A stretch of DNA of 64,000 nucleotides from sequence record MZ475892.1; one strand, given 5' to 3'. The notes under the pieces were generated by a model. That model made no database searches. It was given only the letters and a program-made list of their open reading frames with translations, and had not been told where the DNA came from. The position numbers and the translations under genes are program-made. Shown here in pieces: positions 5,629-34,074 of this stretch (its first letter is position 1; each line of letters starts with the position of its first letter).

Positions 5629-7554
5629 ATGGGCATTCGTGTCGGACGCCAGTATGCTGGCTCTCCTCCGGAGGAGGCCAAGAAAAAGAAACAGTCTACT
5701 CTTGGCTCCGCATCCCTCCCCCGAGCAGTAGGCGAAGCTATCCGCAGTGAGAGTTCGAAACGTCACACAGAGTTTCTTTCTCAGTCTGCTGGTGGTGCAG
5801 GAATGGCTGCTGGTAATATGCAGATTGGTACCGTACCGCTAGACATTGACTTAGAGCCAATGATGGAAGGTATGGACTATGATGCTGATGACCGACAGCT
5901 ATTCAACGTCTACCGCGATATGTATCACTTCGACCCAATCTGCGGCTCTTACGTGGACTTGTTCTCAACGCTGCCGTTCTCTGATGTGAGTTTCAGTGGC
6001 GCGAAGGACAGTGTGCTTGAGCCGTATTACGAAGTGAACGAACGTCTGTCACTAACGTCCAGTATGCCGAACATCTGTACCGACATTCAGGTTACTGGCG
6101 CGTTCATTGGCAGCATGATCTACAACAAAGACCGTAAGAAATTCATCGACCTGATGACGCACCGTTACGACAATATCGACGTGACACCGCTTCCGTTTAT
6201 CAGTCAGGACCCGATGTTTGACTTGCGTATTCCTCAGTACGTGAAGCAAGCCTTCAACAAAGAAGGTAAGCGAATCGATGCGCTCAAGAAAGAGCTGGGG
6301 CCTGGCTTTGTTGAAAAGCTGATGAACGATCAAACGATGGAGCTTGACCCTATTGGGACAATCTATATCCCTCGCAAGACGTTCACTTTCGGTGAAGGTA
6401 TCTCTGTATTCCGTCGTGTGTTGCCTATCTGGCTAATTGAGAAGAACCTGTATCGCGGTACGTTGATTGAATCTGGTCGTCGTCAACGCGGTATTCTTCA
6501 TGCTCAGTTGGGTGATGGCGATCAGTGGGAACCTTCGCAGGAAGAAATGGATTTCATGACAGACCTGTTGCTGTCTGCTGATAGTGACCCTATCGGTAGT
6601 ATCATCACAACTCGTCTGGGCGTCAACATTAGTGAGTTCCGCCAAGGCGGTGACTTCTGGAAGATTACCGATATCTGGGACCAGACTGCTACGTTTAAGA
6701 TGCGTGCAATGGGTATCAGTGAGGCATTCCTGAGTGGTGAAGCCAACTATGATTCCGGTGCTGCTGGCCTGACTATCTTTGTCGAGGCGATGCGTGCTTT
6801 CCGTGATCATCTGACGCGTAAGGTCTACTATGAGAAAGTCTTCCCGCTTATCAGTATGATGAATGGCCTTGCTGTTCAGCGTAACGGTAAGATCGTTAAG
6901 AAGAACAATCTCATGGACGGCGGTCTGACCGAAGTTATGCACAGACTGAATGACGGCTCTAAGCTGTTTATCCCGAACGTGCATTGGTCTAAGCAGCTTC
7001 GTCCTGATGTTGACCAAGCGATGATGGAAAACTTGCGTGCTATGACTGAGCTGGGTGTTCCAGTTCCGTTACGTGCAATCGCATCTGCTGGTGGCTACAA
7101 CTTCGACCAGATTCTGATGGACCAAGATGAAGACCTCGCTATGCGCCGTAAGCTGATGGCTTATAAGAAGCGTATGGCAGAAGTTGATTCTGAGTTCAAA
7201 GCACCAGAAGAAGGCGCGGAAGGTGGCGATAGCTTTAGTTCTGTTTCTAACGATCTCAAGCGCCGTCGTCGTCACATTGCAGGTATCGGTTTGTCCTCAG
7301 CTGTGCTTGGCGGTGAACGCCGTAAAGGCCTGCTGGGCCGTGATTTCGGTGAGCAGTCAGAAGTCTTCGAGTTCACCAAAACCGGCAAGAAGAAACACAT
7401 CATCGGTCAGGCGCGTGCTAACCATAAAGCGAACGATGCTATTTGGAAAGCAGCACGCAACTATGAAGCCAACAAAACGATGCCTCTTGATAACGGTAAA
7501 GTGTCCTTTGAGCCTACCGCGCAAGAGCTTCGCGCTATGTCGAGACTTCGCTAA
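5629..7554 (+). CDS. probable portal protein
   Basis: 641 aa just downstream of terL; YRDMYHFDP and GDFWKITDI segments reminiscent of large-myovirus portals; GAGG RBS. Confidence 0.7.
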   Translation: MGIRVGRQYAGSPPEEAKKKKQSTLGSASLPRAVGEAIRSESSKRHTEFLSQSAGGAGMAAGNMQIGTVPLDIDLEPMMEGMDYDADDRQLFNVYRDMYHFDPICGSYVDLFSTLPFSDVSFSGAKDSVLEPYYEVNERLSLTSSMPNICTDIQVTGAFIGSMIYNKDRKKFIDLMTHRYDNIDVTPLPFISQDPMFDLRIPQYVKQAFNKEGKRIDALKKELGPGFVEKLMNDQTMELDPIGTIYIPRKTFTFGEGISVFRRVLPIWLIEKNLYRGTLIESGRRQRGILHAQLGDGDQWEPSQEEMDFMTDLLLSADSDPIGSIITTRLGVNISEFRQGGDFWKITDIWDQTATFKMRAMGISEAFLSGEANYDSGAAGLTIFVEAMRAFRDHLTRKVYYEKVFPLISMMNGLAVQRNGKIVKKNNLMDGGLTEVMHRLNDGSKLFIPNVHWSKQLRPDVDQAMMENLRAMTELGVPVPLRAIASAGGYNFDQILMDQDEDLAMRRKLMAYKKRMAEVDSEFKAPEEGAEGGDSFSSVSNDLKRRRRHIAGIGLSSAVLGGERRKGLLGRDFGEQSEVFEFTKTGKKKHIIGQARANHKANDAIWKAARNYEANKTMPLDNGKVSFEPTAQELRAMSRLR

Positions 7555-7880
7555 TGTATCGCTTCCAGACTTGTCCCATTGAAGGTACGAAGGAGCTGGT
7601 GGTATATCGCCACCCTTCGTTCTCCAACTACGGTCTGGCCTTAAAGGTAAATCGCACTGGTGAGCAAAACGCTGTTCAGTGCGATATTGTCTCAGGCAAT
7701 ATTGATGGCGTCTCTCGTCTGGATGCCATTACAGACCATACTGCCCCACTTGATGTACAGCTATGGGCTTTTACCTGTATGCACATCTTGCGGGAATCTG
7801 TAAATATCGAGAGCATTAATCTTGATACGCTGTTTAGCAATAATGGCGGTATCGTATACTATGGTACTTCAGGAGAATAA
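7554..7880 (+). CDS. hypothetical protein
   Basis: 108 aa, TAATG coupling to upstream gene. Confidence 0.7.
   Translation: MYRFQTCPIEGTKELVVYRHPSFSNYGLALKVNRTGEQNAVQCDIVSGNIDGVSRLDAITDHTAPLDVQLWAFTCMHILRESVNIESINLDTLFSNNGGIVYYGTSGE
7798..7805 (+). promoter_or_regulatory. CTGTAAAT candidate phage promoter
   Basis: Recurring motif, about 80 nt before GTG 7883. Confidence 0.55.
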
Positions 7881-7882
7881 TC

Positions 7883-8269
7883 GTGAGCGGAATGTTTCCT
7901 CATCATGTAATTGAACAAAAGAAAGGCTTCGTGTTTATCGTCACTCCGATTGAGGACGATCCAGACAGTCTCGAAGCTGCGGAAGAAGTGCGTGCAGTAC
8001 TCGAAGAGTCGTGGCCTACTGCACCTTCTGAGTTGACCGTGGACGACGTTCGCGATCCTGAAGAAGCTGAGTTAATCTTGGCTGACATTCTGGAGGTTCT
8101 GGGCGAAGCAGAATCTGAGTACGCGAACAAAGTCCTGATCAACAGCGTGATTGTTGTCGGCGCTCTGGCCATCGTTAACGTCCTGCTGCTGGACGAAGAA
8201 GTCAATTCCGAAGAAGAGGAAGAAGACGATGACGCTGATCAGTCTGCGGACGAAGAAGAGTTCGAATAA
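7883..8269 (+). CDS. highly acidic hypothetical protein
   Basis: 128 aa, AGGAG RBS, Asp/Glu-rich throughout with acidic tail. Confidence 0.75.
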   Translation: MSGMFPHHVIEQKKGFVFIVTPIEDDPDSLEAAEEVRAVLEESWPTAPSELTVDDVRDPEEAELILADILEVLGEAESEYANKVLINSVIVVGALAIVNVLLLDEEVNSEEEEEDDDADQSADEEEFE

Positions 8270-8279
8270 CGTAGACCGT

Positions 8280-8297
8280 GAGGACCTTCGGGTCCTC
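8280..8297 (+). promoter_or_regulatory. cUUCGg tetraloop hairpin abutting a start codon
   Basis: GAGGACC-TTCG-GGTCCTC perfect 7-bp stem, no U tract, ATG at 8298. Confidence 0.7.
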
Positions 8298-8432
8298 ATG
8301 AATCTAACAGACAAGCATCCCGTACTTGCCGCCAAGTATCTCACTAATCAGACCCCTGTGTATGCGCGTGCGTTACTTGATGAACTCAACAACGAGGAAG
8401 TATCTGACCTCTACTATCAAATGGTAGCATGA
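8298..8432 (+). CDS. small hypothetical protein (44 aa)
   Basis: ATG 8298 in frame of track ORF 8151..8432; stop overlaps next start. Confidence 0.5.
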   Translation: MNLTDKHPVLAAKYLTNQTPVYARALLDELNNEEVSDLYYQMVA

Positions 8433-8911
8433 TGGACAAAACAGAGAGCGCAAGCTCCAATAGCGAAAGGCACCGAATCTATTTCAGGCAGCCGCAACGA
8501 GTACCTCCCTTCGATACAGCTTTTGTTCGTGCGTCAGACACCACGAGCCTCAAGCTGCTTCTCTCGGCTGCTCCTGAACATTGTCAGATCATATTGTTTA
8601 CGGACGGCACCGGCACTGCTTATGCCATGAAACGCCTCTTTAAGCGCAAATTCCTTTTGAACTCTCAAGCCCTACAACTCGATCTGCCTACGATAACACT
8701 CACGGGTCAGGTCGTTTATCAGTTCGTTCGCGGCGGCTCTGTGCGCGACAAACTGAGTCGTTACTTCTGTGCGGGACCAAGCTATCTGCATGAGCTGGCA
8801 CAAACGTCCGTTGAATCAGACGTTCTCGATATGTTCTGTTTGGGCTTAGACTTCCATACGGTATTGCGTGCGAGGGAGCGTGGCCGTTCTATTGTCTTTA
8901 CGGAGGAATAA
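8429..8911 (+). CDS. hypothetical protein
   Basis: 160 aa, coupled to both neighbours. Confidence 0.7.
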   Translation: MMDKTESASSNSERHRIYFRQPQRVPPFDTAFVRASDTTSLKLLLSAAPEHCQIILFTDGTGTAYAMKRLFKRKFLLNSQALQLDLPTITLTGQVVYQFVRGGSVRDKLSRYFCAGPSYLHELAQTSVESDVLDMFCLGLDFHTVLRARERGRSIVFTEE

Positions 8912-10492: not shown

Positions 10493-11079
10493 TGGATTTA
10501 TCTTCTATCGGCTATGCAAACAAACCATTTCGCGTTATCCCTGTTACTTCTGGTAATATCGTAACTGATTTCATTGCCGGAAAGTTTCAGGTGATTGGCG
10601 TTGAGTGTAATGCTCGTGGCGCGTACGGCTCGCCGATTCAACAAAGCATTGCACGCCGCTTCCCTGACGTGTTGCAGAAGATGAACGCGCTCGACTACGA
10701 CCACCAGAACTTCATGGGCAGCACGTTGATGCATCCTGTGCAGACTCAGCATCGTCGTCGTTTGTTTGTCGCTAACATGTTCCTTGCACGCGGCTTTGGG
10801 TTAGGCCAGAATCGCACTCAAAGTGAAGGTCCGATTAATCGTTTCAGTGAGCGACACTTGACGCAAGCCTTCGACAGTCTTGTTGATAGCTGTGCATCAC
10901 TCAACATTAGTCTGGACCGCCAGATTGCTGTGCAGCGTTTCTACGGCGGTCTTGGTGGGGTATCTTGGGAAGAAGTATGTGAAGTGCTGGACGCTATTTG
11001 CGCCAAGCATAAATTCAACATGCTGGCTTATCTGCCTAAGAACTATAACTCTAACTTTGTGCGGGGTTCTGCGCAATAA
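10492..11079 (+). CDS. macrodomain protein (Poa1p/DarG-like)
   Basis: GNIV...CNARGAYGSPIQQSIARRFP and YGGLGGVSWEEV match the macrodomain GD/N-x-G-x-M-G and G-x-G-x-GG-x-x-W signatures. Confidence 0.7.
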   Translation: MDLSSIGYANKPFRVIPVTSGNIVTDFIAGKFQVIGVECNARGAYGSPIQQSIARRFPDVLQKMNALDYDHQNFMGSTLMHPVQTQHRRRLFVANMFLARGFGLGQNRTQSEGPINRFSERHLTQAFDSLVDSCASLNISLDRQIAVQRFYGGLGGVSWEEVCEVLDAICAKHKFNMLAYLPKNYNSNFVRGSAQ

Positions 11080-11094
11080 CTCTGGGGTGTATTG

Positions 11095-11427
11095 ATGAAT
11101 ACAATACGCGGTTTTGATTGGCTTTTTTATGAGGATGGCACCGACAGTGGCCAACACTCTGTTTTAAATATCGTCTGTGAACCACAGACTAAATCAATGC
11201 AGGTAGAAGTTCGAAAGGGATGCGCCGCACCTGTAATTCAAGCAATTCAGGAAAATGAAATCCTGTATGCTCAGACTGATGAAGGACTTTATCGAGTTCG
11301 TTATCGTTGTTCGTTTAAGCATCTTGCAGCGAACGCATTTCCTCCAGAGATGACAGTGATCAAGTTGAAGTTGCTTGCACTCGACTTTCTTCCGGGCGTT
11401 ACTACGCACGATAAACCTTTGGACTAA
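11095..11427 (+). CDS. hypothetical protein
   Basis: 110 aa, GGGGTG RBS. Confidence 0.65.
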   Translation: MNTIRGFDWLFYEDGTDSGQHSVLNIVCEPQTKSMQVEVRKGCAAPVIQAIQENEILYAQTDEGLYRVRYRCSFKHLAANAFPPEMTVIKLKLLALDFLPGVTTHDKPLD

Positions 11428-11432
11428 CCGCC

Positions 11433-12155
11433 ATGATTACAGCGAAACACATTGAAAGCCGTTTAAGAACAATAGACTATACCAAGCCTAATCCTGATCG
11501 GGAAATGCTTGTGGCGCTTGTGTCTGATGGACGTTCTCGTATTTTGAAGACAGCACAGATCGATGGTCTGTGTCCGCTGTCTGATAAGTATTTTGAGTTC
11601 TGTCTCAGCCAGGTCGGCTCTTTCTGCACGGCAGGTTACAACGCTGTGGAGATTGCAATGTCTATCGGTGTTCAGCCTATCTATGTCGCAGCGCACATCC
11701 ATCTGCATGGCTGCGATTGGGCACACAGACTTTTAGGCCTGAAACGATTTGCTGCGCTTGCCCGTGGTCCGCACACTGTGTGGTCATCAGGTGAAGCGTG
11801 GTTCGCTTTGGGTGAATGCCAGCGTCGCTCTAAGCTGCACTATGGCACTTCAAGCGGGCAGGAAGCACTGCGCAAAGCAATCCAAAAAGCAGAGATGCCT
11901 TATGTGCTTGCTGCCGCTATCACACATCCCCACCGTCTCATGAGCATTCTCCGTCCGCGTGATGGTCTGTTGTATCGTGACCCACGCATCGAGAAGACGC
12001 TGAAACAACGTGAGAAAGCCGCTGCTGATGCAAAGGCGGAAGGCCGTTCTGTGCTAACGACTGAGAAGCGTAGCGAGTACGGTGACATGGGCAAGTTGTT
12101 TAACGGTCATCTGTCTCGCGCTGATAAGACAGGTAACCCTCGCGTAACTGAATAA
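11433..12155 (+). CDS. hypothetical protein
   Basis: 240 aa in operon context. Confidence 0.7.
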   Translation: MITAKHIESRLRTIDYTKPNPDREMLVALVSDGRSRILKTAQIDGLCPLSDKYFEFCLSQVGSFCTAGYNAVEIAMSIGVQPIYVAAHIHLHGCDWAHRLLGLKRFAALARGPHTVWSSGEAWFALGECQRRSKLHYGTSSGQEALRKAIQKAEMPYVLAAAITHPHRLMSILRPRDGLLYRDPRIEKTLKQREKAAADAKAEGRSVLTTEKRSEYGDMGKLFNGHLSRADKTGNPRVTE

Positions 12156-12166
12156 GGAAACTTATC

Positions 12167-12547
12167 GTGGACAAGAATGAAATCACGCTGTTGATTGATA
12201 GCCTGAACGGAAATCGCAATTTCCCAATCGATCCGGAAGCTGCAATAGGCATGACCCTTGAGCAGTTCATCAAAACCAATGGGAACTTTGTGTTTCTCAT
12301 GAATGATGCTCTCGTCCGTGACATGGTAAGCAAGCAGCATGAGTACGATCCAAACTTCGTACCGGCTACTACTCTCGACGAGATCAACAACGGTCTTATG
12401 GGAACTTTCCACGGTGTCAATGTGTACAGCACTTGGGTGTATCGTGCTCCTGGTGATCTGCCTGCGGACGCGAAGCCTCGTTTCGGTATGTACCGCGCAG
12501 ACCTAAAACAAATCTTCCCGTTGACTAAACATTTCATCGTAAAATAA
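12167..12547 (+). CDS. hypothetical protein
   Basis: 126 aa, AAGGA RBS, GTG start. Confidence 0.7.
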   Translation: MDKNEITLLIDSLNGNRNFPIDPEAAIGMTLEQFIKTNGNFVFLMNDALVRDMVSKQHEYDPNFVPATTLDEINNGLMGTFHGVNVYSTWVYRAPGDLPADAKPRFGMYRADLKQIFPLTKHFIVK

Positions 12548-12558
12548 ACTGTTTACGG

Positions 12559-12597: not shown

Positions 12598-13368
12598 ATG
12601 AGCAATATCGATACCACAATGCCTGAAGGCAAATGGGAGTTCAACGAGTCGGTTGCTTGCGTGTTTGATAACATGCTGCAAAACTCCATCCCATCTTATG
12701 GCCGTATGCGTGACCTGACGTACCGTCTGGGTCGTCGCTTCGTAACTCCCGGTTCAGCTATCGTTGATCTCGGTGCTTCACTTGGCCGAGCTATCGAACC
12801 GTTTGCAAAAGAGTTCGGCAAGTATGACTACCATCATGCTGCTGACGCTCCTGGCGAAGACTACGAAACAGGTAATCACTATAGCCTGTATGAAGTAGCT
12901 CCTGCTATGCGTGAACGTCTGGTGCAGAATGAAGTGCTTCTCTCAGTGAATGCCAAACTGGAAAGTGAATCGCTGGTCGATGCAGACAGCTTCCTGTTTG
13001 ATGGCCAAGTGCATTGCTCGTTGATTCTGAGTGTGCTAACTCTCCAGTTCACGCCAATTGAACATCGTCAACACATTCTGGAAAACGTGTACAACTCACT
13101 GCAACCAGGCGGCGCATTCATCCTCGTTGAGAAGGTGTTAGGCGATAACAACTATCTCGACAAAATGCTGGTGGACACCTACTACCAGATGAAAGGCGGT
13201 AACGGTTACAGCGCCGAGTCGATTGCGACTAAACGTAAGTCATTGGAAGGCGTACTCGTTCCTGTTAAAGCAGCGTGGAACGAAGAACTGTTGCGTAAAG
13301 CAGGCTTCGGTCAGGTGGAGAGTTTCTACCGCGACCTGAACTTCGCAGGATGGATTGCTATTAAGTAA
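12598..13368 (+). CDS. cmoA: CmoA-like carboxy-S-adenosylmethionine synthase
   Basis: WEFNESVACVFDNMLQNSIPSY, DLGASLG, TLQF, LVEK, ATKRKSLEGV, NFAGWIAIK parallel CmoA motifs along the whole length. Confidence 0.85.
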   Translation: MSNIDTTMPEGKWEFNESVACVFDNMLQNSIPSYGRMRDLTYRLGRRFVTPGSAIVDLGASLGRAIEPFAKEFGKYDYHHAADAPGEDYETGNHYSLYEVAPAMRERLVQNEVLLSVNAKLESESLVDADSFLFDGQVHCSLILSVLTLQFTPIEHRQHILENVYNSLQPGGAFILVEKVLGDNNYLDKMLVDTYYQMKGGNGYSAESIATKRKSLEGVLVPVKAAWNEELLRKAGFGQVESFYRDLNFAGWIAIK

Positions 13369-13377
13369 GGAAATACT

Positions 13378-14640
13378 ATGAAAGTAAACGGGCGTATCTT
13401 AGCTATCGTCCCACACAAGACAATGCAAGACCGTACCAAGTCTGGTGTGGGTTCGTACATTGATGGGCTAGAGGCATACGGCTTCTGCGACTTTATCACG
13501 GACGGAGAGAACAGCTCCGTTACGAAAAGTCAGTGGTTCACTTACGGTGACACTACTCTCAGTGACGGTTATAAGATAGGGCATATCCAGAGCGAGTTGC
13601 TGATTGCACTTGAGCGCCTCCCATACCGTGCGATTATTTGCAGCACGTATGAGGCGATTGAAGCCTGTGTGTCTCTGGGACTGCCAAAGATTATGCCCGT
13701 TTACTATCGCACGCACAACAGCTTTTTGCTCACACAAGATCTCAAGGGTCTTGGTGCAGAGAAGATCCATCGTGCGTTGTTGCAAGCACGCGTCACAGGG
13801 CTGCGCATACTTGCTAACTGTGATTCGACTGCGATCAATCTTACTGAGCGCTATAAGACGCCAGCACACGTTGCCTACAACTCGTTCTCGGTGCCTGACT
13901 ACAACCCACCAGCTCGGCGTTCTCCGCAACTGTTGATTATCTGTCGCTATGAGAAGGTCAAGCGCACGCTGTTTGCTGCGCGTATTGCTGCTGCATCAGG
14001 ACTACCCGTTCGTGTTATGACAGGCAGTGATCGTCAAGCACGCAATTGGGAGAAAGAGCTGGCTGAGGCGGGCGTCAAAGAGTATACGGTCGTCAGTGGC
14101 CTTAGCGGCAAACAGAAACTCGAATTTATAGGCGCTTGCACCGTAGCCCTTTCTACTGCGAGCGTTGAATCATTTGCTAATGGTGTGCGTGAGTCTATCC
14201 CCTACTGTCCTACCTTTATCGTGCAAACATCCAAGTACGATTGGGCTAAGGACTATACGCGCTTCTGTACCGCCGACAAGCATGTTCATATCAGAACTGT
14301 TGATCGCGTATCGGACCAAGCCGTAGCTGAAATCGGAAGTGAGATAGCGCAAACAGCTACCACTCGTTATCTGACAGGACCTCAGCGTAAGCAGCTACTG
14401 ACTGCTTGGGCAAAGCAAGTTGATCGTGGTTGGTCCGACTTTGTCCAGAAGGCTGTTGTTGACGATGACGGCAAGCCGCTGCGCACCGAGCTGTATCAAG
14501 AACTGATCGACAAGTCAGAGATCGATTGGTCACAAACGCCCACGCTGATGCGTACTGTAAATGCGTTACATAAATGCCACGCTCGTTTGGGCCTGACATT
14601 TGATGGCACTAAAATCAAATATAAGAGGAAGCGCAAATGA
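13378..14640 (+). CDS. GT-B fold glycosyltransferase (GT4-like)
   Basis: 420 aa; ICRYEKVKR and STASVESFANGVRES resemble GT4 nucleotide-sugar-binding motifs. Confidence 0.65.
   Translation: MKVNGRILAIVPHKTMQDRTKSGVGSYIDGLEAYGFCDFITDGENSSVTKSQWFTYGDTTLSDGYKIGHIQSELLIALERLPYRAIICSTYEAIEACVSLGLPKIMPVYYRTHNSFLLTQDLKGLGAEKIHRALLQARVTGLRILANCDSTAINLTERYKTPAHVAYNSFSVPDYNPPARRSPQLLIICRYEKVKRTLFAARIAAASGLPVRVMTGSDRQARNWEKELAEAGVKEYTVVSGLSGKQKLEFIGACTVALSTASVESFANGVRESIPYCPTFIVQTSKYDWAKDYTRFCTADKHVHIRTVDRVSDQAVAEIGSEIAQTATTRYLTGPQRKQLLTAWAKQVDRGWSDFVQKAVVDDDGKPLRTELYQELIDKSEIDWSQTPTLMRTVNALHKCHARLGLTFDGTKIKYKRKRK
14555..14562 (+). promoter_or_regulatory. CTGTAAAT candidate phage promoter
   Basis: About 75 nt before ATG 14637. 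Confidence 0.5.
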
Positions 14641-15713
14641 GTGTTATCGGTGATATTTATAACATCCCACAACCTTTCGCAATGTATGTCGGGAATTGTG
14701 AGACGCGTGCTCAAGCCAAAGTTGCTGCGGGCACAATCGAGTGGGCGCCAGAGAAAGTGTGCTGCACCGTAGATGATGGTAACAACCTGTTCCCTAACGT
14801 ACCTTCAATCAACCCTGCTGACGTGCATAAGACAGATGCAGAAACTTTAGTGATTGGCTGTGCACCTTTCGGCGGCCGCATTGACGAGCACATGGACAAA
14901 GCTATTCGTAGCGCTATCTATCGTGGACGCAACATCGCTGCTGCTATGCATACGCGCCTGGCGGATAATCCTGAATACGTTGAGCTGGCTGATCGCTACA
15001 ACGTCAAGCTGTATGACTTCCGCCATCGTCCTGATGCGTACCCACTCGGTACTGGTGAGAAGCGTAGCGGTCTGCGTCTGTTAACTGTCGGTACTGATAG
15101 CTCATGCGGTAAGAAGTTTACCACGCTGTCTCTGTATCGTGAACTCAAAGCTATTCATGAAGCCACTACGTTCTGCTCTACTGGCCAGACGGGTTTCTTG
15201 ATTAGCGGTTGCGGTATCAACAACGACACGATTGTTGCCGACTTCCTTGCTGGTGCCGCTGAATCACTTTCGCCTGATGGTCCTGCTGATCATGTTTATC
15301 TGATTGAGGGTCAAGGCGCTATCACGCACCCAGCATACACAGGCGGCAGTATGAGTCTGATTGCTGGCTCGCAGCCTGATCATCTCATCCTGTGTCACGC
15401 ATGGAACCGTCAGAATCAGTTGGGCGTTAAGCGTAAGCCTGACCTTGATTTCGAGATGCGTGCTAACATTGAAGCGGCACGTATTCACGGTCTCAACCCG
15501 ACTTACATCGGTATCAGCATTAACTTCTCTGAGTGCGACCTCACCGCCGATGAGCAAGATAAAATCCTATACCAACTCGCATCAACGTATGAGATTCCCG
15601 TGTTCGACCCATCACAGGACACTTCTGTGTTGCGCGATCTCGCTCGTATGTTAGCAACTAAAGCCAAAGCAAGGAGCCTCGATGGCCAAGCATCAACTGC
15701 GCAAGCTGTTTGA
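14637..15713 (+). CDS. DUF1611 family P-loop protein (DgcN-like)
   Basis: LLTVGTDSSCGKKFTT, STGQTG, DFLAGAAE, IEGQGAITHPAY, GSQPDHLILCH. Confidence 0.88.
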   Translation: MSVIGDIYNIPQPFAMYVGNCETRAQAKVAAGTIEWAPEKVCCTVDDGNNLFPNVPSINPADVHKTDAETLVIGCAPFGGRIDEHMDKAIRSAIYRGRNIAAAMHTRLADNPEYVELADRYNVKLYDFRHRPDAYPLGTGEKRSGLRLLTVGTDSSCGKKFTTLSLYRELKAIHEATTFCSTGQTGFLISGCGINNDTIVADFLAGAAESLSPDGPADHVYLIEGQGAITHPAYTGGSMSLIAGSQPDHLILCHAWNRQNQLGVKRKPDLDFEMRANIEAARIHGLNPTYIGISINFSECDLTADEQDKILYQLASTYEIPVFDPSQDTSVLRDLARMLATKAKARSLDGQASTAQAV

Positions 15714-16557
15714 ACAGCATGTGAAAAAAGAAGTGAAAGCAGACAAGGTAGCTGTGCTGCTTTCATCTGGCCTCGATGGTTTGGTCAGTGCGTTAGCTGC
15801 ACACGACCTAGGCAAGAAGGTACATGCCTTCACATTCCAAATGGGTGACAACCCTAGCTTTGACAGTCGCCACGCACAGATCGTTGCACAGAAGATGGGA
15901 TGGGAGTTCACTCTCGTTAAAGTTCCCACCAGCGTGTCTGCTATCGCGTTAGCGTGGCGCGTGCTACACTCCAAGTATCGCTGCATCAAGAAGCGTGACT
16001 ATGAATGTGCGTACCCTATGGTCTATTGCTACAAGGCAATCAAAGACGCTGGGTATAAGTATGTGTTAAGCGGGCTGGTGGCCGATGGCTACTTCCTGTA
16101 TAACCGTAACACGCACATTCAGAAAATCAGCGGCCCGCACTCTGACGCTCAGAAGTATCATGAGTTCCGTACTCAATACTTTAGTCCGTGGCTTAAACAC
16201 GGTAAGAAGTCTCTGGGCGTTGACGGGTACAACCCGAGCGGTATGTTGCAGCATGAAATGTTGTGCGATAACTTCGGCCTGATTCACGTTAACCCGTGGA
16301 TGCAGAACAAGGTGTTTGACTACTTCATCAAATACACTTGGCAGGAGCTGAATCAGCCTAAGCAGAAGATGCCACTAACCGAAGCGTGGGCAGAACACAT
16401 TGCTCTTGTTGGTCATCGCCCACACAGGGGCTATCAGACAGAAGCCAAAGTGCCTGAATACTTTGAGCATCTGATCGATAACCCTGAGATTAACTTTAAC
16501 GGGCGCAAGCGCATCATGGACGTGGCACGCGACTGGTCCAAACGAGAGCCTGAATAA
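15682..16557 (+). CDS. asparagine-synthetase-like PP-loop ATP-dependent ligase lacking a glutaminase domain
   Basis: AVLLSSGLDG (SGGLDS variant), LSGLVADGYF, NPWMQNKV; 291 aa, no N-terminal Cys1 domain. Confidence 0.8.
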   Translation: MAKHQLRKLFEQHVKKEVKADKVAVLLSSGLDGLVSALAAHDLGKKVHAFTFQMGDNPSFDSRHAQIVAQKMGWEFTLVKVPTSVSAIALAWRVLHSKYRCIKKRDYECAYPMVYCYKAIKDAGYKYVLSGLVADGYFLYNRNTHIQKISGPHSDAQKYHEFRTQYFSPWLKHGKKSLGVDGYNPSGMLQHEMLCDNFGLIHVNPWMQNKVFDYFIKYTWQELNQPKQKMPLTEAWAEHIALVGHRPHRGYQTEAKVPEYFEHLIDNPEINFNGRKRIMDVARDWSKREPE

Positions 16558-16812
16558 ATGCATCCTGTTATCACAGACTTTCTTGGTCCTATCGTTAAGC
16601 GGCTGGGCTTATTCACTGCTATATTCGGTTTTGTCGGCGTGCTGCTGTCTGTGATCGCAGTGCTTGTGTGCCGCCCAGAAGTCCTTCAATACGAATACGA
16701 TACTGTAAATAGACTTCGTACTGAGGGTATTGTATTCTTGGGTAAAGGCGTTCTTGTTTACATCGTAGGCGAGATACTTGAAGGCACGTTCAAGTGGAGA
16801 AAAGATGATTAA
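16558..16812 (+). CDS. small membrane protein
   Basis: 84 aa with two hydrophobic stretches. Confidence 0.6.
   Translation: MHPVITDFLGPIVKRLGLFTAIFGFVGVLLSVIAVLVCRPEVLQYEYDTVNRLRTEGIVFLGKGVLVYIVGEILEGTFKWRKDD
16703..16710 (+). promoter_or_regulatory. CTGTAAAT candidate phage promoter
   Basis: About 95 nt before ATG 16805. Confidence 0.45.
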
Positions 16813-19184: not shown

Positions 19185-19586
19185 ATGAGACCTGAAAACA
19201 TTTCACGCACCTATCGCGTCGGTCAGTCTGACCTGGAGAAAGCACACAACGTCTGCGGAGAGAACAATGTAACACTCTCAGATGTGGTACGCAGATACAT
19301 CGAAAGAATCGTACTGACTGAGGGTGAGTTCCTTATGAGCGAGCGTAAGCACGTACCTGAGTCTCAACTGAATGTACGCCTGCCCTTTTACATTGCGCAC
19401 TCCTTTGCATCTGTGTGTAAGTCTCGTGATACGTTAGCCTCTAAAACCATTCTCAACTTTGTCAGGAATATTGCTCTTTCAGGTACTATCCCTGAGGAGT
19501 TAAAGTACGCCTCAGACACAGAGTTGCGTGCCTATATTACCTCCGAGCGCTCCCGCCTCGATGCACTGGAAGCAAAACTTAAATGA
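19185..19586 (+). CDS. tandem ribbon-helix-helix DNA-binding protein
   Basis: SRTYRV...TLSDVVRRYIERI and QLNVRLP...ASKTILNFVRNI. Confidence 0.55.
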   Translation: MRPENISRTYRVGQSDLEKAHNVCGENNVTLSDVVRRYIERIVLTEGEFLMSERKHVPESQLNVRLPFYIAHSFASVCKSRDTLASKTILNFVRNIALSGTIPEELKYASDTELRAYITSERSRLDALEAKLK

Positions 19587-20422
19587 TTCTAACTAGCCCC
19601 ATTCGCTATCAGGGCAACAAGCGCACTCTGATGCCTCTTATTCTTGAACATGCGCCTGTGAAGGATTGCGTTCGCATGATAGACGCATTCGGCGGTAGCG
19701 GTACTGTTGCGCTCAACATGCCTCACAAGTTTCGCATCTACAATGAATTGAGCACGCCTGTGTTTGAGATCGTCCAGTTGCTTGCGCATCAAGATCCGAA
19801 GAAAACGTTGGGTCAGATCAAGCGTATCGTCAAGCGTTTTTGTCTAACCAATAGCAGCCAAGACAACTACGACATGTTCCGCGCGTATGTGCAGAAGAAG
19901 CCTAGCCCTCTTCACCATTACATCGCACACAGGCATGCACGCTCTAACATGCTGCGCTTCAACCAGAAAGGCATCTACAACGTGCCGTTCGGCGAGCGGG
20001 GACTGATTGGCAAGTTCGATCAGCTCGAACAGGAGCTGGTGCAGTTCCACGAGCGTATGCAGAACACGCACATCACCAACATGCGCTACAACATGTTGCT
20101 CAAGTCTGTGTCAAAGCATATCGGACCTAACACGTTCATTTACTTTGACCCTCCGTATCTTGCTAGCGGTGCGATGCAATACGGTAAGTGGACTGAGCAC
20201 AACGAACGCAACCTGCTGTCCGTACTTGAGTATCTGAATCGTCAAGGCTGCCCGTGGATGTTGAGCAACGTTCTCCAACATCGGCATCACACGAACGACC
20301 TGCTCAAACGCTGGCTAAAGAAACACGCAACGACTGTCATCTATCCTGACAAGTCTTATTCAATGGCCAACTCTCATTCCGATAGTCACAGCACTATCGA
20401 GATCCTGGCAATGAACTACTGA
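19583..20422 (+). CDS. dam: DNA adenine methyltransferase (Dam/D12 class)
   Basis: PIRYQGNK, DAFGGSG, FNQKGIYNVPFG, YFDPPY. Confidence 0.92.
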   Translation: MILTSPIRYQGNKRTLMPLILEHAPVKDCVRMIDAFGGSGTVALNMPHKFRIYNELSTPVFEIVQLLAHQDPKKTLGQIKRIVKRFCLTNSSQDNYDMFRAYVQKKPSPLHHYIAHRHARSNMLRFNQKGIYNVPFGERGLIGKFDQLEQELVQFHERMQNTHITNMRYNMLLKSVSKHIGPNTFIYFDPPYLASGAMQYGKWTEHNERNLLSVLEYLNRQGCPWMLSNVLQHRHHTNDLLKRWLKKHATTVIYPDKSYSMANSHSDSHSTIEILAMNY

Positions 20423-31238: not shown

Positions 31239-31937
31239 ATGGCAAAAATTGCTAAAGCAAAGGAAGGGAAAAAGAAAAGCAACCCTATGTTGATTGACCT
31301 GAAAAAGTTCAAGTCAGTTAAACAGCTTAAGGGTGCGAAGTACAACCCTCGTTTCATTACAGACAGCCGACTGAGAGCGCTCGAAGGTTCTTTGGGCAGC
31401 TTCGGTGATTTGTCTGGCGTGGTGTTCAACAACAGCGTAGACAGTGGCGTATTGATCTCAGGCCACCAGCGTCTCAAGTCGATTGAGAAGTGGGACTCGC
31501 GCATTGAGATTCAACAAACGTCTGACAAGTACGGCACGGTAGCGTTGGGTTATATCCATGCTACCAGCGCCAAAGGTAAAACGATCAGCATCCCACTGCG
31601 TATCGTTAACTGGTCAGATAAGAAAGTGGAGTTTGCTGCTAACATTGCTGCGAATGCCCACGGCGGTGAGTTCGATAACAAAAAGCTCGCGTCTCTTGTT
31701 GAGAAGCTGGACCTGACTACAATCAAGCCAGCTCTTATCGGGCTTGACCCGTTAGAGATTCGCGGCCTGCAACAGACGCTGAGCAAACAAGCTATCGTCG
31801 AGCAGGAAAAGCGTGTTGGTAAAACAACAGGCAAAATGAACGGCAGTACTGGCGAGTTCAAAGAGTACACGACTGATGAAGTTGGTACTGCGCTGACCTG
31901 CACCTGCCCACGTTGTGGCTTTAAGTTCGAGGGATAA
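31239..31937 (+). CDS. ParB/Srx-like nuclease domain protein with C-terminal Zn ribbon
   Basis: YNPRFI...GSFG...LISGHQRL; CPRCG at C-terminus. Confidence 0.8.
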   Translation: MAKIAKAKEGKKKSNPMLIDLKKFKSVKQLKGAKYNPRFITDSRLRALEGSLGSFGDLSGVVFNNSVDSGVLISGHQRLKSIEKWDSRIEIQQTSDKYGTVALGYIHATSAKGKTISIPLRIVNWSDKKVEFAANIAANAHGGEFDNKKLASLVEKLDLTTIKPALIGLDPLEIRGLQQTLSKQAIVEQEKRVGKTTGKMNGSTGEFKEYTTDEVGTALTCTCPRCGFKFEG

Positions 31938-31938
31938 C

Positions 31939-34074
31939 ATGATCATCAAGCCGCCTACAATGAAAGAGATTAATAAGCTGCCCAAGCCTTGGTCAGGTAT
32001 GAGTTTCTTTGCAGGTTGCGGTGGTTCATCTACCGGTCACAAGATGGCCGGTATTAACATCCTACTGAGCAACGAGTTCGTGGACGCGGCTCGTGAATCG
32101 TATGAAGCGAACCATCCAACAACCAAAGTGTTGCCCCACGATATTCGTCGTCTTGACCCGAAAAAGCTGCTTAGCTATTGCGGCCTGAGTCAGGGCGAAC
32201 TGGACTTGCTCGACGGCAGTCCTCCGTGCTTCACCGAAGACACGTTCATTCATACCGACACTGGTATGAAGTTCATCACTGATATGCGCATCGGTGACTT
32301 CGCTATGACCTCTGTTGGTAAGTATCATCCAGTGTATGACACGATGGTACGTCCGTATGACGGTCAGATGCACAGAATTGAAACGCTGCTTGGTCAGAAC
32401 AATGCAACGCCTGAACATCCGTTCTTTGTTCGTCGTCAGAATGAAGAAACTGGCGGGTACAGTGAGCCGTTCTGGTGTGACGCTAAAGATGTGCAGGAAG
32501 GTGACCTGTTAGGTACGCCTCGTGTTACGCCTGATATGGGCGAAGCACACACGCATGAGATTATCTCGTCGTTGACTGCGCAGCTTGTGCGTTGGATTGC
32601 ATTGCCTGAGTTCTGGTGGCTGATTGGTCACTGGTGCAATCGCGGTGCAATCGATAAGATTCGTGGTGTCGATGTTATTCAATTCACCTCGATGACAGCG
32701 ATGGAAAACTCGCTGGTGGAACAAGCGTTCGACGTGCTCAAGTTAAGCAGCATCAACAGCGCTTCGTCCGACATGGGCGTTCATCGTAAGACCGTTCGTG
32801 TTGTTATGGACACAGACCTGTTGCTGTTCTTGCGTATGTTTATCGCGCAGGGCAAGAAGTCTATGTCCCGCCGTCTGCCTGGCATGATCTTCCATCTGGC
32901 TAAAGAGCTGAAACAGCAATTCATTCTCGGCTATCTGGGTCGTGATTACGTCACAGCAATGGGCGTTGGTCATGCGTTAGAGGCTGACTCAAAGCGCTTC
33001 CTAGTTGAGATGAATTACCTGTGCTGCTCTGCGTTCAACAGACCGCTGTTCGATGCAATGTTGTTCACTGACTTGCATTACGGTAGTCCGATGTTACCAC
33101 CGAGTCGCTTCATTACCAAAGAGCACATCGGCTTCCTGTTCTTGCAAGAAGAGGTTAATTTCTTCTTTGAGTTCGAGCCGGAAGACCCGCATCTGTGGGT
33201 TGAAGTGATTGAGAACTTTACGCATCATGAAACGTGCAACGTCTATAACTTCTCAGTCAGTGTTGATGAGACGTATGTTGCTAACGGCATGGTCGTGCAT
33301 AACTGCAAAGGGTTCTCGACTGCTGGCGTGAAAGAAGACGGCTGGGGCAAAGAGGTTAAGTACAGCGGCAACAAGTATCAGCAAGTCGATGACCTGTTCG
33401 ATCAGTATTGCCGTATGCTCAAGCACATGCAGCCTAAAACGTTCACTGCGGAAAACGTTAGTGGCCTCGTTAAAGGTGCGTCGAAGGGTTACTTCATTGA
33501 AATCATGAAGACCTTTGATCAGCTGGGCTACTATGTGCGAGCGCCGTTGCTTAATGCTGCGTGGCTTGGTGTGCCTCAGTCTCGTGAGCGTATCATCTTT
33601 ATGGGTGTGCGCAAAGACGTGGCGAAAGCACTCGGCTATAAAACTGCGTTGACTGCTGTGCCTGATGTAACACCTCAATCAAGCATGGCGTTCCTTGCAG
33701 ATGCATTGCCGAACATTCGTCGTTATAAAGGTACGGAGCGTGACATTATCAAGTATCTGCCTGCTGTTAACGGCCCGATGCCTACGATTACCGCTGCTGA
33801 TGCTATCGCATACGAAACAGCACGCTTCTCCTCTGCTGGCTTCATTGAAGACGACAAAGGGCACAGACGCAAGCTGACGATTGACGAACTCAAAGTTGTG
33901 TCAGGCATGCCTAGTGATTACGTGCTCACAGGTAAGTTTGAAGAACAATGGGAACGTCTCGGTCGTGTGTGCGTACCTGCAATGACGTGTGCTGCGGCAA
34001 GCGCGTTGATACGCCATGTGCTTGAGCCTTACGCGAAGCTGCGTAAAAAGAAACCTGGGGATCGTTTTCGTTAA
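31939..34074 (+). CDS. C5-cytosine methyltransferase family enzyme with intein; probable carboxymethyltransferase
   Basis: FFAGCGG (I), DIRRL, GSPP|C (IV), ENVSG (VI), QSRER (VIII), RKLTIDE (IX), ERLGRVCVP (X with Arg for Asn); GAGGGA RBS. Confidence 0.9.
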   Translation: MIIKPPTMKEINKLPKPWSGMSFFAGCGGSSTGHKMAGINILLSNEFVDAARESYEANHPTTKVLPHDIRRLDPKKLLSYCGLSQGELDLLDGSPPCFTEDTFIHTDTGMKFITDMRIGDFAMTSVGKYHPVYDTMVRPYDGQMHRIETLLGQNNATPEHPFFVRRQNEETGGYSEPFWCDAKDVQEGDLLGTPRVTPDMGEAHTHEIISSLTAQLVRWIALPEFWWLIGHWCNRGAIDKIRGVDVIQFTSMTAMENSLVEQAFDVLKLSSINSASSDMGVHRKTVRVVMDTDLLLFLRMFIAQGKKSMSRRLPGMIFHLAKELKQQFILGYLGRDYVTAMGVGHALEADSKRFLVEMNYLCCSAFNRPLFDAMLFTDLHYGSPMLPPSRFITKEHIGFLFLQEEVNFFFEFEPEDPHLWVEVIENFTHHETCNVYNFSVSVDETYVANGMVVHNCKGFSTAGVKEDGWGKEVKYSGNKYQQVDDLFDQYCRMLKHMQPKTFTAENVSGLVKGASKGYFIEIMKTFDQLGYYVRAPLLNAAWLGVPQSRERIIFMGVRKDVAKALGYKTALTAVPDVTPQSSMAFLADALPNIRRYKGTERDIIKYLPAVNGPMPTITAADAIAYETARFSSAGFIEDDKGHRRKLTIDELKVVSGMPSDYVLTGKFEEQWERLGRVCVPAMTCAAASALIRHVLEPYAKLRKKKPGDRFR
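32227..33303 (+). mobile_element. intein (359 aa) with degenerate LAGLIDADG region
   Basis: CFTEDT start, ATPEHPF block B, VVHN end, Cys +1 is the catalytic Cys; LIGHWCNRG and FILGYLGRD remnants. Confidence 0.92.

Follow-up and report, generated by a model that had tools for sequence, protein, structure and literature searches.

The first 64 kb of the genome of Erwinia phage pEa_SNUABM_34 (MZ475892.1; 64,000 nucleotides, hereafter the window), a 264-kb jumbo myovirus of the genus Snuvirus, encode a block of genes with two predicted enzymes that appear to extend a known DNA cytosine hypermodification pathway. The block lies on the + strand and is opened by a homologue of the carboxy-S-adenosylmethionine (carboxy-SAM) synthase CmoA (12598..13368, 256 amino acids, aa). 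A predicted GT-B/GT4-like glycosyltransferase (GT; 13378..14640, 420 aa, ATG start), a DUF1611/DgcN-like protein (14637..15713, 358 aa, ATG start) and a CmoY-like, AMP-forming amide ligase, here termed class 1 (15682..16557, 291 aa), follow, and these coordinates agree with an initial annotation that had placed GT and DUF1611 between cmoA and the ligase. We favour, with moderate confidence, the reading that GT and DUF1611 are add-on enzymes, for tailoring or supply, of a CmoA/CmoX/CmoY-type pathway, because their gene order is conserved in divergent phages and they co-occur with one class of ligase.

Conservation of the gene block

Related loci were drawn from cultured phages, IMG/VR, assembled metagenomes and bacterial genomes, and were annotated by tblastn with the proteins of the window. 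The Snuvirus order, CmoA-GT-DUF1611-ligase, recurs in the pEa_SNUABM_3 group with a racemase-like gene before the ligase (CmoA-GT-DUF1611-racemase-like-ligase) and in the AD1/Alexandra group without GT (CmoA-DUF1611-ligase). Locus L004 has the order CmoA-GT-DUF1611-racemase-like-ligase-DAHP synthase (DAHP, 3-deoxy-D-arabino-heptulosonate 7-phosphate), and L011 has CmoA-GT-ligase. A C5 methyltransferase (C5MT) is adjacent to the unit in L007-9 (C5MT-GT-DUF1611-ligase-CmoA) and in L023 and L115 (C5MT-DUF1611-ligase-CmoA). The remaining contigs carry GT-DUF1611-ligase (L031), DUF1611-ligase (L112), DUF1611-racemase-like-ligase (L113), GT-DUF1611-racemase-like-ligase (L114) and DUF1611-DUF1611-ligase (L127/L128), the last beside dCTP-deaminase-like and thymidylate-synthase-like genes. 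GT directly precedes DUF1611 in seven arrangements, and in one it directly precedes the ligase. A CmoY-like ligase lies downstream of every phage-clade DUF1611 gene whose downstream side is visible, either directly or after the racemase-like gene. Between lineages, GT, DUF1611 and CmoA share only 27-49% protein identity, and the ligase of the window is 60-87% identical to the ligases of cassette types A-E.

Among 50,697 cultured phage records, DUF1611 was found in 34 and the class-1 ligase (at least 80% identity) also in 34, and each listed DUF1611 record is also listed with the class-1 ligase; tier-1 GT occurs in 21 of the 34 DUF1611-bearing records. Phages AD1 and pEa_SNUABM_2, which belong to one genus, have CmoA proteins that are 93% identical, but DUF1611 together with the class-1 ligase is swapped for a ligase of 24% identity. 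In related phages the slot between cmoA and the ligase is empty or holds a 2-oxoglutarate (2OG) oxygenase gene. For example, phage Y3 (L116, NC_047880.1) has a 2OG-Fe(II) oxygenase gene (PF13640; 14594-15232) in the slot after cmoA, together with a class-2 ligase, which suggests hydroxylation as a further tailoring step on an amide adduct. In a published comparison of AD1, Y3 and JA11, a cmoA-type methyltransferase, an asparagine synthase and a cytosine methyltransferase are all present in AD1 and Y3, and all absent from JA11.

The surroundings of bacterial DUF1611 genes differ markedly from these. At the 80 best bacterial loci, no gene for CmoA, the ligase, GT, the racemase-like enzyme or C5MT lies within 6 kb, and bacterial homologues are at most 41% identical to the phage protein. 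In Pseudoalteromonas (L038), DgcN is paired with an enolase-type racemase; no such enolase-superfamily partner (DgcA) was found at the phage DUF1611 loci examined.

These patterns bear on the possibility that GT and DUF1611 are unrelated accessory genes in a variable slot, with DUF1611, for example, draining host D-glutamate or other D-amino acids, and GT modifying a host or phage glycan. The slot after cmoA does vary among close relatives, cmoA is non-adjacent in several metagenomic contigs, bacterial DgcN acts on free D-glutamate and is paired with an enolase-type racemase, and the phage DUF1611 protein is acidic, as small-molecule enzymes are. However, the order beside a CmoY-like ligase recurs in unrelated phage backbones, twice with a C5 methyltransferase immediately upstream, DUF1611 and one ligase class are found in equal numbers of cultured records, and phage-clade copies lacking the ligase were not encountered. 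We therefore regard independent accessory functions as rather unlikely.

The core pathway

In Synechococcus phage S-B43, CmoA makes carboxy-SAM, the C5-methyltransferase homologue CmoX writes 5-carboxymethylcytosine, and the asparagine-synthetase-like CmoY ligates glycine to the modified base (Yang et al. 2025, PMC12783734). That study also records other ligase clusters whose amines are unknown, and defines candidate carboxymethyltransferases by an SPPC motif plus the arginine for carboxy-SAM (R350 of SpCmoX). The CmoA homologue of the window matches phrog_4752 (2.9e-78) and TIGR00740 (1.5e-39, 136 bits, under the cut-off of 193), and shares 28% identity with SpCmoA (E 8e-26), which has been characterised by experiment. 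Its ligase consists of an asparagine-synthetase C-domain without the glutaminase domain (PF00733 at 9.9e-14, residues 5-138 of 291) and is 33% identical to SpCmoY over the full length (E 2e-50).

The distal partner of the block is a CmoX-type C5-cytosine DNA methyltransferase gene ~18 kb away (31915..34074, + strand). This open reading frame (ORF) matches PF00145 (6.3e-38), with weaker, sub-threshold matches to intein-splicing and Hint models, and an intein interrupts the methyltransferase at its catalytic Pro-Cys motif. The exteins are 55% and 31% identical to SpCmoX, keep the sequence GSPPC, and have an arginine at the position of SpCmoX R350 (ERLGR opposite ERVGR). Because homologues of CmoA, CmoY and CmoX, the last with SPPC and the arginine, are all encoded in the window, the known pathway is, judged by homology, complete there. 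An intein also occurs in the CmoX-type gene of a metagenomic relative (L007), and the near-identical L009 has none.

The initial annotation had proposed that GT and DUF1611 supply or decorate the amine moiety of a new hypermodification. Gene order and ligase co-occurrence agree with a role in DNA modification. The methyltransferase nearest to the block is Dam-like, and the CmoX-type gene stands well apart from the block. This nearest methyltransferase gene, 3 kb downstream of the block (19583-20422), encodes a D12-class N6-adenine methyltransferase with a DPPY motif. We excluded it as the pathway methyltransferase because it belongs to the backbone, being present also in ligase-only relatives, and because the window encodes another enzyme that has the CmoX signature. 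The Dam-like gene is kept in relatives with all cassette types, and is therefore probably an independent methylation system.

Could the whole cmoA-ligase unit modify RNA, for example tRNA, or make a small molecule instead? The classical role of CmoA is in the synthesis of cmo5U in tRNA, RefSeq labels the protein a tRNA methyltransferase, carboxy-SAM is also used in natural-product synthesis, and the top fold matches of GT act on small molecules. Yet the window encodes a DNA methyltransferase with the CmoX signature, and in L007-9, L023 and L115 such a gene adjoins the unit; the ligase has a DNA-acting homologue, and the block showed no CmoB-like gene. A target other than DNA thus seems quite improbable.

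The predicted glycosyltransferase

The 420-aa protein has no match in Pfam (E<=0.01), PHROG or NCBIfam, and a single-sequence search of PDB sequences returned only noise (E 1.7). Its AlphaFold2 (AF2) model has a GT-B fold with two Rossmann-like domains (mean predicted local distance difference test, pLDDT, 83; predicted template modelling score, pTM, 0.83). Foldseek found at least 500 PDB matches to this model at E<=0.001, and the top 50 listed are nearly all nucleotide-sugar GT-B transferases, GT4 foremost. The listed matches are led by GlgM, SenB, BshA, MshA and tll1591 (E 4e-10 to 1e-8), and WaaG, SdgB and the DNA arabinosyltransferase of phage HY126 (PDB 9iqz) are also among the matches, although identity to any solved structure is only 12-16%. 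In BFVD, the fold matches are mostly glycosyltransferases of phages and giant viruses.

A profile built from the seven closest relatives gave a weak match to a tetrahydrobiopterin (BH4) glucosyltransferase (E 0.0097). The alignment spans the R/K pair and the E-x7-E motif (the GR..EKG and E..FGN..E segments), and the corresponding residues of GT, R190, K195 and E264-x7-E272, are invariant across the seven. Against PF00534 (Glycos_transf_1), tier-1 relatives score 17.6-23.6 bits, under the cut-offs of 26.4/27, which are passed only by some tier-2 relatives (e.g., P0018 at 31.7 bits). Assignment of the protein as a GT4-like glycosyltransferase is supported by profile, motifs and fold. This upholds the identity first proposed for the gene, by fold and motifs and without a family-library match.

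The C-terminal part of GT includes an additional ~110 residues, among them a basic tail. Its isoelectric point (pI) is 9.25, and all 13 close relatives (13/13) have a pI of 8.9-9.5 and the basic C-terminal tail. The ratio of nonsynonymous to synonymous substitution rates (dN/dS) is ~0.08, with dS near saturation, indicating purifying selection. No gene for nucleotide-sugar synthesis was seen in the cassette, and a metagenome scan with the GT alignment returned a single locus.

The next-nearest clade of relatives (~440-465 aa, acidic) appears three times independently in or beside 7-deazaguanine clusters of T4-like cyanophages. Members are Synechococcus phage BUCT-ZZ01 (L026, ON615601.1 68503-69846), L028 (7001-8323), L029 (7001-8356) and P0076; the clusters contain FolE, QueD, QueE and phosphoribosyltransferase genes, and one next-nearest relative is fused to a ParB_N domain. 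The 7-deazaguanine clusters hint at a glycosylated 7-deazaguanine-type DNA base, and these contexts of the next-nearest relatives point to work on nucleic acid.

As an alternative, the initial annotation had raised glycosylation of virion fibres. GT would then act on virion proteins, for example the hair-like fibres. The group does have the 'hairy Myoviridae' morphology, and GT4-like enzymes, with SdgB among the fold matches, can glycosylate proteins. This alternative is weakened because AD1 and Y3 are 'hairy' and lack GT. In addition, GT lies among early DNA-metabolism genes and not structural genes, and in L007-9 it lies between a C5 methyltransferase and DUF1611. We consider virion glycosylation very improbable.

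The DUF1611 protein

The 358-aa protein clearly belongs to DUF1611, as first annotated: it matches PF07755 at 2.2e-46 (158.3 bits, cut-off 25) and PF17396 at 5.5e-18 (65.5 bits, cut-off 22.6). Against the NCBIfam DgcN equivalog NF041892 it scores 289.8 bits, under the cut-off of 480, and by these profile scores it is DgcN-like but not DgcN. The closest solved relative is PDB 7xrj, titled 'N-acetyltransferase DgcN' (sequence E 4.3e-53). Structure prediction, suggested in the initial annotation as a check, gave an AF2 model (pLDDT 88.9) that superposes on 7xrj with template modelling (TM) scores of 0.77/0.83 at 34% identity.

Across 16 phage-clade and 62 bacterial homologues, 58 columns are identically conserved, including GTDxxxGKK and TGQTG. 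Two other conserved columns are switched between phages and bacteria, Y/F and C/R, and the second is the bacterial arginine beside TGQTG, a cysteine in the phage clade. From this pattern we infer that the phage proteins catalyse the same chemistry as their bacterial homologues on a changed substrate. Weaker fold matches to CoA-binding and NDP-forming acyl-CoA synthetase folds, and to dethiobiotin synthetase, were also found; the CoA-type matches are compatible with an acyl-CoA donor. The protein is acidic (pI 5.5), and its dN/dS of 0.14-0.20 (dS near saturation) indicates purifying selection. With intact catalytic scaffolds and purifying selection, both GT and DUF1611 look active.

Related phages add a short alanine-racemase-like enzyme (300-327 aa) that depends on pyridoxal 5'-phosphate (PLP). 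Its gene separates DUF1611 from the ligase in four lineages (L002 8113-9048, L004 12322-13287, L113 9055-10038 and L114 9052-9954) and has an intact PLP motif, VK.N.YGHG. Erwinia phages with this gene have a DUF1611 protein of another subtype, 57% identical to that of the window, compared to 75%. The L127/L128 contigs, which are viral and of high GC content, have two tandem, divergent DUF1611 genes (5698-8822) that are 33-35% identical to that of the window, with no CmoA within 8 kb.

Proposed mechanism

In the favoured reading, the core steps follow by homology the proven enzymes of S-B43. CmoA would make carboxy-SAM, the intein-containing CmoX-type methyltransferase would write 5-carboxymethylcytosine on the phage DNA, and the CmoY-like ligase would adenylate the carboxyl group and join an amino-acid-type amine. 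DUF1611 would be an acyl-CoA-dependent N-acyltransferase of the DgcN kind, acting on a D-configured amino-acid moiety and functionally locked to the class-1 ligase; it may either prepare the amine substrate of the ligase before ligation or cap the amino group of the adduct afterwards. The position of the racemase-like gene between DUF1611 and the ligase fits a D-amino-acid substrate. In related phages the alanine-racemase-like enzyme would supply the D-isomer, and the phage of the window would rely on host D-amino-acid pools. GT, optional among relatives, would attach a sugar, taken from a host nucleotide-sugar, as the outermost and final layer, most likely to the adduct on DNA. The pathway would then be expected to yield a glycosylated, N-acylated amino-acid amide of 5-carboxymethylcytosine, presumably serving to block host nucleases.

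A different division of labour is conceivable, in which DUF1611 itself forms the amide. The ligase would do no more than convert the carboxyl on DNA into an activated adenylate or thioester, DUF1611 would transfer the activated group to a D-amino acid, and GT would decorate the result. Since 5-carboxymethylcytosine is cytosin-5-yl-acetic acid, coupling it as an amide to a D-amino acid gives an N-(substituted acetyl)-D-amino acid, and products of this class are what DgcN forms from acetyl-CoA. Consistent with such a role, the class-1 ligase was never seen without DUF1611 (34 and 34 records), the two swap as a unit, the racemase-like gene lies between them in four lineages, and tandem DUF1611 genes precede the ligase in L127/L128. 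The DgcN scaffold is kept, with the arginine beside TGQTG changed to cysteine in phages, and there are the weak fold matches to CoA-binding and acyl-CoA synthetase folds. However, SpCmoY alone ligates glycine, the ligase of the window is its full-length homologue, and this model gives GT no acceptor. To our knowledge, asparagine-synthetase-type enzymes do not pass acyl groups to a separate transferase, which also counts against it. Overall, an amide-forming DUF1611 is unlikely; that the cassette writes a D-amino-acid-bearing base, with the DgcN-like enzyme moving the ligase-activated carboxymethyl group onto a D-amino acid and GT glycosylating the adduct, we hold to be decidedly doubtful. If it did, this would be the first D-amino-acid-bearing, glycosylated DNA base, made by a new two-enzyme route to amide-linked DNA hypermodifications, and an amide-forming DUF1611 would be the first role of the family outside D-glutamate catabolism.

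Several observations weigh against GT and DUF1611 as tailoring or supply enzymes of the pathway. Although each phage-clade homologue seen is beside a CmoY-like ligase, not all were found with cmoA: the initial annotation had named such independence as a point against its proposal, and no CmoA lies within 6-8 kb on each side of the units on seven contigs with six arrangements (L031, L112, L113, L114 and L127/L128; for L112, 2.4 kb upstream only). This does not show that CmoA is absent there, as the contigs are fragments and the methyltransferase of the window is itself 18 kb off; alternatively, the DUF1611-ligase unit may use another carboxyl handle in these contigs. The slot after cmoA is also one into which unrelated accessory genes could land. 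GT reaches no curated family threshold, and the favoured reading names no hydroxyl acceptor for it. A plain N-acetyl-D-amino acid has no free amine, so a diamino substrate or another order of steps is needed. Charge was given little weight as a clue to DNA binding (GT, the ligases and the C5 methyltransferases are basic, and DUF1611, CmoA and the racemase acidic), because the proven DNA enzyme SpCmoY is acidic (pI 5.8). The literature searched holds no DNA-composition, chemical or functional data on these phages, and nothing useful on DNA modification or restriction resistance in them.

Layout of the locus and neighbouring genes

The junctions within the block are tight. The cmoA stop codon (TAA, 13366-13368) is followed by AAGGA and the GT start at 13378, and GAGGA precedes the ATGA at 14637-14640 in which the GT stop overlaps the DUF1611 start. 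The ligase ATG (15682), with AAGGAG 6 nt ahead, lies 32 nt inside the DUF1611 ORF (stop 15711-15713), and the ligase TAA directly adjoins the next ATG at 16558. Shine-Dalgarno-like motifs thus stand ahead of the GT, DUF1611 and ligase starts. Both the ATGA and the 32-nt overlap are as initially described, and the translational coupling proposed from them is real but ordinary: in the list of ORFs, overlaps of 1 and 4 nt are frequent elsewhere in the genome (e.g., at 8911, 10492, 19583 and 21195). Because such overlaps are common, coupling alone does not prove a shared function. We rejected it as weak evidence, and the argument must therefore rest on other grounds.

The only sigma-70-like site before the block is a weak match at 12521..12550 (+ strand; TTGACT-18-TAAACT, 9/12 matches) in the 50-nt gap ahead of cmoA, and such sites are no more numerous in the region than expected from shuffled sequence. 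A site scan against shuffles found no convincing + strand terminator inside the block. The small ORF that adjoins the ligase stop (16558..16812, + strand, 84 aa, TAAATG junction) has no Pfam match, and its tblastn matches are solely in the Snuvirus relative pEa_SNUABM_7 (L001/L014). Alexandravirus relatives have an unrelated 206-aa gene at this position.

Further genes accompany the cassette in metagenomic relatives. That at 14162-15025 in L004 encodes an AroFGH-type DAHP synthase (TIGR00034, 180.2 bits, cut-off 173.2), and by stimulating the shikimate pathway this phage-encoded enzyme would increase the level of prephenate, which CmoA uses as co-substrate. A link of this PF00793 gene to 3-deoxy-D-manno-octulosonate (KDO) sugars was rejected, given its AroFGH type. 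In L031, a gene for a 302-aa GNAT-family acetyltransferase (10557-11465) is encoded two genes downstream of the GT-DUF1611-ligase unit.

Comparison with known systems

Clusters for 5-hydroxymethyl-based thymidine and cytidine hypermodification are modular, with a writer of the handle followed by variable tailoring enzymes. The cassette of the window is similar in that related phages carry differing tailoring sets. The handle is a carboxyl group instead, and DgcN-like enzymes, alanine-racemase-like enzymes and this GT clade are unreported for the 5-hydroxymethyl clusters in the literature searched.

Phage DNA sugar transferases of GT-B fold exist, as in HY126 (PDB 9iqz), and this enzyme and the GT4 enzymes MshA, BshA, GlgM and SenB share with the GT of the window the fold, the E-x7-E motif and the R/K pair of the C-terminal domain. 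The presumed acceptor of the GT of the window differs, being an adduct on a carboxymethyl handle and not on a hydroxymethyl or hydroxy handle.

D-glutamate catabolism by DgcN (D-glutamate N-acetyltransferase, EC 2.3.1.312, PDB 7xrj) and DgcA offers a parallel for DUF1611. The phage proteins share the two-domain fold, with 58 identical columns, and in bacteria as well as in several phage cassettes the gene after DUF1611 encodes a racemase. The bacterial racemase is an enolase-type N-acetyl-D-glutamate racemase, whereas that of the phages is a PLP-dependent, alanine-racemase-like enzyme, and, unlike in bacteria, the neighbours of phage DUF1611 are DNA-modification genes.

When carboxymethylcytosine was described in 2025, the amines and further decorations that phages attach to the handle were left open. 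The main text of that paper mentions neither glycosyltransferases nor DUF1611 (PMC12783734), a comparative review of jumbo phages does not mention the GT and DUF1611 genes, and no other paper in the literature searched ties them to carboxymethylcytosine. The cassettes name three enzyme families that have no tie to the pathway in that literature: a distinct GT4-like clade, DgcN-like DUF1611 proteins and alanine-racemase-like enzymes. If the favoured reading is correct, DNA chemistry would extend to glycosylated, acylated amino-acid amides, DUF1611 would gain a second biological role, and the modification would help to explain how phages that are candidates for biocontrol evade host nucleases. 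Cultured and closely related jumbo phages of Erwinia and Dickeya form a natural series (ligase only, in pEa_SNUABM_2; ligase and oxygenase, in Y3; DUF1611 and ligase, in AD1 and Alexandra; GT, DUF1611 and ligase, in pEa_SNUABM_34 and pEa_SNUABM_7; GT, DUF1611, racemase and ligase, in pEa_SNUABM_3), and the chemistry should therefore be readable by comparing existing isolates.

The closest known system remains CmoA/CmoX/CmoY of S-B43, with which the window shares a carboxyl handle, ATP-dependent amide ligation and homologues of all three enzymes. In S-B43 the three genes are neighbours, and GT, DUF1611 and the racemase are missing. In the phage group of the window, genes for two or three additional enzymes separate cmoA from the ligase, and the intein-containing methyltransferase of the window is encoded 18 kb away. 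The core pathway is thus already known, and GT, DUF1611 and the racemase-like enzyme are probably add-ons that make these cassettes candidates for new variants of it.

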